This document shows, one piece after another, positions 61,892 through 64,000 of a stretch of 64,000 nt of DNA. Each line of letters starts with the position of its first letter. Position 1 is the stretch's first letter. The notes beneath the pieces are model-generated. The model searched no databases and was not told where the DNA came from. It saw only the letters and a list, made by a program, of their open reading frames with translations. The stretch lies in contig CDRNVI010000044.1 of assembly GCA_977017575.1 (NCBI GenBank), forward strand, positions 310,001 through 374,000. Direction: 5' to 3'. Made by a program: the position numbers and the translations under genes. This DNA is from Paramoeba atlantica. Lineage: Eukaryota; Protista; Discosea.

Positions 61892-62066
61892 GAGAAACAG
61901 TAAAAAAGGAAACAATAACTTCTTCGTAGTGAATACCAGAATCAGGATCAGAAGTGTAACTATGGATGTGAGAAGGGCACGAATTCTATATTAGAGGGTC
62001 TGAATAGTTCAATAATGAAGTTGAATTTGTTTTGCTAAAAGAGTGCTTTTAATATACAGTGTTATA

Positions 62067-62500
62067 CCGGTGAAACGGTTATTAAGGATAAAAGTAATTA
62101 AGGCAGAACGGATTTAAAAATTAATTATTGCCTTAATTAAAGTTGCCTTAATTAAAATGGCGCTGATAAAAGCCCAAAACAGGTCTTATTTAAATATTGT
62201 CGTTTGTAGCATAAGTATCACATTTCTGCTAAAAGTGCTCAATTTCTGATCATTTGTCATGTTTTTCGAACTTTTCTAGACGAGATTCGCCTGTTTCGCC
62301 TACCTTTACGGTCTTCAACCAATTCAACATGTGAGAGAAATGCTAAAACGATCATTGAAAGGAGAAGTCTGAGACAGAATCATGAAATTAATTTTCCCAA
62401 TTTTTTCCCCAAAATGACAAAAAAATAATTATTCCTTAATTAAAGCTGCCTTAATTAAAGTTGCCTTAATTTTAATTACCCTTAATTGAAGTTTCTACGG
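62067..62500. mobile_element. 434-bp TA-flanked MITE (pogo/Tigger-like ends)
   Basis: TA-CCGGTGAAAC..ATTAAGG ... CCTTAATTGAAGTTTCTACGG-TA; subterminal (T)GCCTTAATTAAA repeats at both ends. Confidence 0.6.
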
Positions 62501-62603
62501 TATTTAATTATTTAATTACGCTTTTAAGGTTATTTTTGGCTAAAATTAATCTTAATTAAATTAACCGTAATATAATCCACTCGTAAATTAATAATTTTTG
62601 AAC

Positions 62604-63551
62604 CAGAGGTCCGTAAAACTACAAAAACTATTTTATAGTACTATTATAGTACTATAAATTATATTTTTTTTACTATTTTTCTTAGAAAGTTTTTTCTAAA
62701 AGTATTGCTTGAAATGCCGACTCGACGCAATTCATTTTTTATCACTCCCGTTTTCTTGAAAGATTTCTCACTGTTTTTCACATCACTATGCCCAACAAGC
62801 TCGTGGTCAAGCTCAAACCATTTTTCCACACTTCGTTGGAGTCGATGGGGAAGTCGACCTACTTTAATTTCAGATGTGTTCCAGCCCAGACGCCTTGTCT
62901 TCTTAGGTCGCTTTTCCTGTCGAAGTACAATGTGTAAATGTGAAATAGGGGGTAAGTGATTCATCAAAATTCTTCAAAAGATTATGAATTTTTCAGATAT
63001 TGAATCTTACAGGCTCTGTGATGTGTTTTTGTGTTTTACCTTGCCATTGAATACGCCACGTCTAGGATCCAACGAGTGATCTAACGGGAACTCGTTGGAC
63101 AACTGTAATGCGGACGTAATCGTTGGACAACTATAATGTTTGCACGCTACAAGGGAAGAGCATTATGGGAAGAACTTGTGAGCTATAGGATCCCGACTTT
63201 TTCCATTTCTGCACAAAAACTACAACTCTTTTCACTTTTTTCTACGCGACAGCGTATCCACGCCACTTGCTCCACCTGACATCTCGTGACCCCTCTAAGC
63301 CTCTATACCTCCATCGGCTCTCTCCTGCCCCGCGAAATTCCTCCAGGTCCATCGACCGATCTGTCTACCGAGTGCCTTCCTGGACATGAAACACTGATAA
63401 AGACCATATAGTTTTTATAGTACCATACAGTATAGTGTTTATAGTACTATAAATGAGGTTTATAGTACTATAAATTTTCTTGAAACACTATAAACTATCT
63501 ATAAATTATTTATAGATAGTAAACTATTTAAAATAGTTTTAGGGACCTCTG
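62604..63551. mobile_element. 948-bp hAT-like non-autonomous DNA transposon
   Basis: Exact 8-bp duplication TTTTGAAC (62596-62603 and 63552-63559). TIRs CAGAGGTCCGTAAAACTA and TAGTTTTAGGGACCTCTG (17/18). Subterminal TATAGTACTAT repeats. Confidence 0.85.
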
Positions 63552-64000
63552 TTTTGAACACACTTTTTGAGTAACTTTTAAGCAGGGTTCGCGGAAACTT
63601 TAAAACTTTCAAGAAAGTACTTTAAAGTTACTTTATTTTTTTTCTAAAAACTTTCAAAAACTTTTTTTTTCTTCGTATACTTTAGAATCACAGAATTTCT
63701 TTCATCATGATTTTGATTCGTCTGTATTCATTACAATTTATTGAGGGAGATACTACTCCCTCGCTATCGTAGGTTAATTCGTCGTGCCCGATTTGTGGCC
63801 CGATATCGTTTCAGGTGAGTTTTCGAAAAAAATGTTTACAAAGACGTATGAATCGAATTGAGTGACAAGATCACTAGTTTTTCAACAATTCCGATGGGTA
63901 CCCCCTGCCCCCCCCCCCTCCCCACCAGGGGGATCATAGCAATATTTGAATTTTTGAAAAATAAAACTGAAAAATTTTGGATGAAAATAGAAAAAACATA

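Follow-up and report, generated by a model that had tools for sequence, protein, structure and literature searches.

The window, by which we mean the whole 64-kb stretch of DNA analysed here (C44:310001-374000, in a 45.7-Mb assembly of 248 contigs), contains, between RMI1 and a ubiquitin/L40 gene, a 948-bp segment that a sequence-only reading had taken for a derivative of a hAT-type DNA transposon in a kinetoplastid genome. Does a cut-and-paste element reside at this locus, to which family does it belong, and can it still move? No class II elements were found in 57 trypanosomatid genomes (PMC12278014), and the Merlin elements of Bodo saltans and Perkinsela sp., whose copies are few and degenerate, are the first DNA transposons reported in kinetoplastids (PMC8101967). 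Full-text searches on hAT elements and kinetoplastids yielded nothing beyond these two reports. We conclude, with a probability of about 0.9, that positions 62604-63551 are a non-autonomous, internally deleted member of the hAT superfamily, lying in the RMI1-ubiquitin/L40 spacer of a kinetoplastid-type nuclear genome.

The host is a kinetoplastid-type nuclear genome, as had been claimed from the letters alone. The assembly contains a full-length match to KMP-11 (PF03037, E 5e-43), and 26 of the 27 ORFs of at least 200 aa in the window run head to tail on the + strand, the lone minus-strand ORF overlapping a + strand ORF. A spliced-leader-RNA-like gene is also present, with an exon that ends CAGTTTCTGTACTTTGTTG directly before GT. 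The pattern for such genes matched at two places only (L041:1500-1560, that is C14:91759, and C23:255060), which probably represent two alleles; their exon has an unusual end (TTTGTTG followed by GTAC), and the expected tandem spliced-leader array was not seen in a pattern search of the assembly. Many contigs form near-identical pairs (C44/C66, C23/C14, C53/C15, C7/C65, C52/C8, C64/C47, C41/C36 and C39/C40), so the assembly is largely haplotype-resolved.

The insertion lies within the one-strand gene array, 710 bp past the RMI1 stop codon. The spacer is a nest of repeats with a GC content of 34.5%, against about 44% for the whole window (the neighbouring repeats are included in Table 1). A search by way of the repeats that flank the window copy yielded no related empty site; these belong to separate repeats and are nowhere else found together. 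A fragment of a related hAT transposase lies some 8 kb outside the window (L071:7871-8307, C44:381871-382307) and is 37-54% identical to the protein encoded on contig C39 that is described below.

Table 1. The element, its internal features and the repeats of the surrounding spacer, with positions in the window
Feature	Positions	Strand	Remarks
Element	62604-63551		948 bp; non-coding, decayed copy
Left target duplication (TSD), TTTTGAAC	62596-62603		Identical to 63552-63559; fits the hAT target consensus nTnnnnAn
Right target duplication (TSD), TTTTGAAC	63552-63559		Exact repeat of 62596-62603
Left inverted end (TIR), CAGAGGTCCGTAAAACTA	62604-62621	+	Pairs with the right end at 17/18 bases
Right inverted end (TIR), TAGTTTTAGGGACCTCTG in + strand letters	63534-63551	-	Reverse complement is CAGAGGTCCCTAAAACTA
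Two left subterminal palindromes, TATAGTACTAT(A)	62634-62656		Element positions 31 and 42; sites at 62634 and 62645
Three right subterminal copies, TATAGTAC(T/C)AT	63416-63472		Sites at 63416, 63440 and 63461; 21-24-bp spacing kept in family and sister-family copies
Decayed remnant of the first ~38 transposase codons (MPNK...)	62788-62900	+	ORF at 62788 starts MPNK and is then frameshifted
19-bp direct repeat, TCGTTGGACAACTrTAATG	63092-63138	+	Two copies 28 bp apart, at 63092 and 63120
Decayed remnant of the hAT C-terminal dimerisation region, ALWEELVSYRIPTFSISAQKLQLFSLFSTRQRI	~63160-63260	+	Collinear with the relic on C83 and with intact transposases
MITE-like repeat, ~440 bp	62065-62503		42-nt imperfect inverted ends, internal CCTTAATTAAAG repeats; at least 25 loci at 84-95% identity
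89-bp repeat	62507-62595		Abuts the left TSD; 100% identical at C70:334610, C66:111980 and C20:89071
First ~160-bp repeat	63583-63742		At least 15 loci
Second ~160-bp repeat	63740-63900		At least 15 loci

The outline of the element first noted holds in all its parts. The target duplication is exact over 8 bp, and the inverted ends of 18 bp begin with CAGAG and match at 17 of 18 positions. They fit the YARNG pattern and are conserved across the family; the sole mismatch is a G/C asymmetry at position 10, which recurs in other family members. The ends of hobo and Hermes start with CAGAG as well. Subterminal repeats had also been reported, and we identified these as a 12-bp palindrome, TATAGTACTATA, with two copies near the left end and three near the right. 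When searched as TATAGTACTAT with at most one mismatch, it has five sites in the 64-kb window, every one of them inside the element; its 10 matches on both strands stand against a mean of 0.52 in shuffled sequence, and none of 100 shuffles reached 10. The left subterminal palindromes are likely candidates for transposase binding sites.

The interior of the window copy is decayed. The ORF with the MPNK start resembles the beginning of the transposases on contigs C39 and C83. The transposase remnant reaches only E ~5 in hmmsearch, Pfam assigns no family to the remnant ORFs of this copy even at E up to 10, and tblastn of the C39 transposase against the element gives nothing significant (best E 0.43). 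Because these remnants are too decayed to score, the link to a transposase rests on better-preserved members of the family. Roughly 260 bp of the interior (about element positions 310-570) were traced to no source. Two short frames had been thought weakly similar to the hAT TRW motif. The peptides in question, GTRWTTVM and RWTTIMFAR, do exist, in different frames that are each bounded by stop codons, but they are not a conserved protein motif, because both arise from the 19-bp direct repeat read in two frames; their likeness to TRW is an artefact of the DNA repeat. The genuine transposase remnants sit elsewhere, at the two places listed in Table 1. MITEs are shorter than about 800 bp, of high copy number and free of coding traces, whereas this element has 948 bp, about 19 loci and ORF remnants, and is better called a deletion derivative than a MITE in the strict sense.

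The origin of the element can be traced on contig C83 (C83:247830-257336). Here, DNA matching element positions 50-195 at 89% identity runs directly into an ORF beginning MPNKRRNDESQAGF, the N-terminus of which is 61-73% identical to the C39 transposase. Beyond a long interruption, the sequence for transposase residues 207-472 passes without a gap into DNA matching element positions 806-871 at 92% identity. By this arrangement, the C83 locus is a broken autonomous copy of the window element's own family. Family copies correspond to it in both coding remnants. One copy shares 80% DNA identity with the C83 parent through codon 38, and the better-preserved copies read MPNKR-RGQAQIVFSHFVEVDGE..., matching positions 1-38 of a transposase-alignment profile with E values of 0.0006-0.01. 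A later stretch of these copies, ALWEELVVSYRIPSFSISAQKLQLFSLFSTRQRI, lines up with FWEDLVVSDQFPILSLSARKL of the C83 relic and with the stretch FWSDLV..FP.LS.AA.KL...SEAACERLFS of intact transposases; in this dimerisation region, the DNA match between a family copy and C83 has an E value of 7e-4. The collinearity of the remnants with C83 marks the element as a derivative by internal deletion; it is no unrelated sequence with acquired ends. We found no intact transposase between exactly matching CAGAGG ends in the assembly, where the sole cognate copy, that on C83, is broken. The parent of the family encoded a hAT transposase, of which the C83 relic is all that is left.

The family is widespread in the genome. 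The window element has 97 BLAST matches in the assembly, and the family lies on more than 20 contigs. With allelic pairs collapsed, it occupies about 19 loci. The first 15 bases of the inverted end, with position 10 left free, occur exactly at 41 termini, and with one mismatch allowed the same pattern has 89 matches, compared with 11 for a reversed control pattern. TSDs were collected for part of these loci. At seven independent ones the duplication of 8 bp is perfect, and no two of the seven are alike (TTTTGAAC, CTCAGAAT, TTTTTTTA, CGAAGTTC, ATATTTTC, ATTTATAG and AGTCATAG); at an eighth, 7 of the 8 bases agree. The search for further copies suggested by the earlier reading was thus answered many times over, and the family has transposed to about 19 loci. 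Among 12 TSDs, those of the family together with four sister-family sites, seven have T at position 2 and eight have A at position 7, a bias in the direction of nTnnnnAn (binomial p about 0.003, from a small sample with A/T-rich targets).

Independent copies are 93-95% identical to one another and lie 2-5% (2.2-4.8%) from the consensus, whereas allelic pairs are 99-100% identical (differing by 0.4-1.5%); no near-identical non-allelic pairs were seen among the family copies compared. The window copy is 4.2% from the consensus, with private indels near both ends, and its two alleles are 0.8% apart. Since it is present on both haplotigs, and since 4.2% from the consensus far exceeds 0.8% between alleles, this copy predates the split of the two haplotypes. 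At C40:819095 there is a left end alone, the remainder of a truncated copy. In the family copy on contig C71 (L070, C71:159380-163219), multi-copy repeats of at least four other families are inserted, and no allelic contig for it was found in the assembly.

A sister family retains what the window family has lost. Its ends, CAGGGGTCCCTAAAAC (CAGGGG), differ from those of the window family at one of the first 16 bases, its palindromes stand at positions 31 and 42, as in the window element, and the first 55 bp of the sister element on C39 are 85% identical to the window element. This copy of 3343 bp (C39:428709-432051, with an allele on C40) carries an intact ORF of 626 aa that is 100% identical on the two haplotigs. 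A MITE of about 917 bp (L043:3402-4320 on C39, ends AACCSCCCACAGCGAA.AAGTCACCCCCC, TA flanks) lies 20 bp from the right end of this transposase-encoding element.

The C39/C40 protein is, by its sequence and its structural model, a predicted hAT transposase with an RNase-H-like DDE core, an all-helical insertion domain and a dimerisation domain. It scores 22.6 bits on Pfam Dimer_Tnp_hAT (PF05699; cut-off 21.4) and also scores on DUF659; proteins on C37 and C48 exceed the Dimer_Tnp_hAT cut-off too, and paralogues reach 27-38 bits. SDAG, CxxH, PTRWWS and SEAACERLFS are invariant when the protein is aligned with three paralogues, and so are the C248xxH251 and R286-W287 columns of the transposase alignment; the first catalytic aspartate was assigned by motif, not by superposition. 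The C39 transposase as a single sequence had no match in the PDB, and the alignment profile matched the Hermes transposase (E 0.0025) across the glutamate motif, SEAACERLFS aligning to SSAASERTFS. For the AlphaFold2 model (mean pLDDT 61, core 65-88), Hermes accounts for each of the ten best PDB matches, with about 500 columns aligned and E values between 4e-11 and 6e-9; the fold that ranks next has an E value of 4e-4. A word-based search of 5.8 billion proteins returned two matches only, an ENA protein at 95% identity, which is probably from the same organism, and one at 26%. Together, the parent relic on C83 and this related transposase bear out the original assignment of the segment to a non-autonomous hAT derivative.

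The assembly has 35 Dimer_Tnp_hAT matches above cut-off and at least 71 matches to the C39 protein, so that hAT transposases, which the sequence-only reading had proposed to look for, are present. The matches to the C39 protein span 27-100% identity, which indicates an old and diversified hAT population. The idea that the DNA belongs to a Perkinsela-like endosymbiont and that the element came from its amoeba host found no support. The Perkinsela genome is roughly 10 Mb, so that a 45.7-Mb assembly fits this identity poorly, and such a size, together with so many and so varied transposase-related matches, fits long residence and not recent uptake by a small endosymbiont.

Given hAT biology, we infer that a hAT transposase acting in trans would bind the inverted ends, which start CAGAGG, together with the TATAGTACTATA palindromes next to them. 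Excision would follow, leaving hairpins on the flanking DNA, and reinsertion at staggered cuts 8 bp apart would generate the 8-bp duplication.

Evidence of movement comes from another family copy. On contig C41, an 893-bp copy is flanked by the TSD TTTTTTTA, and its flanks match contig C36 at 96-99% identity. The element is absent from C36, where about 29 nt of A/T-only, partly palindromic low-complexity filler stand in its place, so that C36 does not offer a clean empty site. This is a presence/absence polymorphism between haplotypes, and an allele without the element, which had been named as a point to check, does exist for this member of the family. The difference could reflect a new insertion, an excision footprint or an unrelated deletion, which the sequence does not distinguish; in any case, the absence of the C41 copy from C36 implies that the family moved or was lost recently. 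At a further hAT copy, on C47, a 4.06-kb element is nested at about position 24 (L045:1025-5088, C47:213995-218058); it encodes an ORF of 865 aa with a DUF6729 match (E 2e-11) and a weak MULE match, and its flanking duplication looks like CAAAAA. The allelic copy on C64 (L003) lacks the nested element, which is therefore a haplotype-specific, and hence recent, insertion. The window copy itself is on both haplotigs, C66 being collinear over 3.8 kb at 99.2% identity.

The window copy is now probably immobile, or mobile only by cross-mobilisation through the C39/C40 sister transposase. We regard it as most likely a fossil, because the only copy of its cognate transposase is broken. That it is still mobile today, driven by the intact sister protein, seems to us unlikely, if worth taking seriously. 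Such mobility would be served by an uninterrupted 626-aa ORF with identical alleles, by ends and palindrome positions that are nearly the same in the two families, by the intact TSD and inverted ends that the window copy retains, and by a family in which the C41 copy is polymorphic. However, hAT transposases usually co-evolve with their ends, and the cognate (C83) and sister (C39) transposases are just 53-73% identical. The distance of the copies from their consensus and the lack of near-identical non-allelic pairs among those compared also speak against a live element, as do the fixation of the window copy in both haplotypes and the MITE that the C39 element carries close to its right end.

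The insertion might have been co-opted as a spacer that supplies trans-splicing or polyadenylation signals to RMI1 or to the ubiquitin/L40 gene. Its position inside the one-strand array, at 710 bp from the RMI1 stop codon, and its presence in both haplotypes would suit this role. We nevertheless consider co-option improbable: the alleles differ equally inside the element (8 of 947 bases) and in the flanks, showing no sign of constraint, and at least four other repeats occupy the same spacer.

It is highly improbable that the element belongs to another superfamily with TSDs of 8 bp or similar length, such as P or Mutator/MULE, and resembles hAT by coincidence. DUF6729/MULE-like elements do exist in this genome, and one hAT-like transposase gives a weak, sub-threshold MULE match, but the C83 relic and the sister protein have the hAT dimerisation domain, the CxxH and RW motifs and the Hermes fold. 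In the fold search, the P element transposase falls behind Hermes by about seven orders of magnitude; the ends are short and of the YARNG type, and the TSDs, in the small sample above, lean towards nTnnnnAn.

Finally, we give almost no credence to the segment being contaminant or host DNA misjoined to the contig, despite its locally low GC, for which clustered A/T-rich repeats, each of them multi-copy in the genome, account, since the family is spread over more than 20 contigs and, as far as assemblies can show, the RMI1-element junction that had been singled out for confirmation is shared by C44, by its haplotig C66 and by an ENA contig (ERZ24900291:ctg3964l, 6.1 kb without mismatch, maybe from the same reads), so that misassembly was rejected.

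The preferred reading, of a decayed and internally deleted hAT element, makes the window copy itself an ordinary fossil; the interest lies in the host lineage. Cut-and-paste elements have lived, and probably still move, in a kinetoplastid-type genome, at least this one, whose genes form polycistronic arrays. On the broader proposition, that this kinetoplastid lineage harbours a large, diversified and recently active class II mobilome of which hAT elements are a main part, we are evenly divided. If it is true, elements have transposed since the present diploid lineage arose, as recorded by the C41/C36 site and the nested insertion on C47, and the loss of DNA transposons in trypanosomatids is a derived state whose starting point is open to study here. 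For this hAT family the parent can be traced to a relic, a sister lineage still has an intact transposase, the candidate binding sites are conserved, and the haplotypes are polymorphic. The family may serve as a natural system for how insertions between co-transcribed genes are tolerated, and possibly as a native transposon tool.

Among the closest known systems is Ds, which in maize stands to Ac as a non-autonomous hAT derivative with an internal deletion. The window element is like Ds-type elements in its 8-bp TSD, its short ends starting with CAG, its subterminal repeats, its retention of both ends with small transposase remnants, and its presumed dependence on a transposase in trans. It differs in having a kinetoplastid-type host and a family whose cognate transposase is only a relic, in its 12-bp palindrome as the subterminal motif, and in the ~260 bp of interior without a traced origin.

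The C39 protein is similar to the transposases of Hermes, hobo and Ac (PDB 2BW3, 4D1Q) in its Hermes-like fold, its dimerisation domain, its CxxH motif and its ER.FS glutamate motif, and the RW motif reads PTRWWS in C39-type transposases and PTRWNS in Hermes. In contrast, C39-type transposases are just 16-17% identical to Hermes, and the best relative of the C39 protein outside its own organism, in the word-based search, is the one at 26% identity.

Like the Merlin elements (PMC8101967), which occur in kinetoplastids outside the Trypanosomatidae, the window family represents class II elements in a kinetoplastid-type genome. Merlin belongs to an IS1595-like DDE superfamily, whereas the elements described here are hAT elements, with dozens of copies, intact ORFs and polymorphism between haplotypes.
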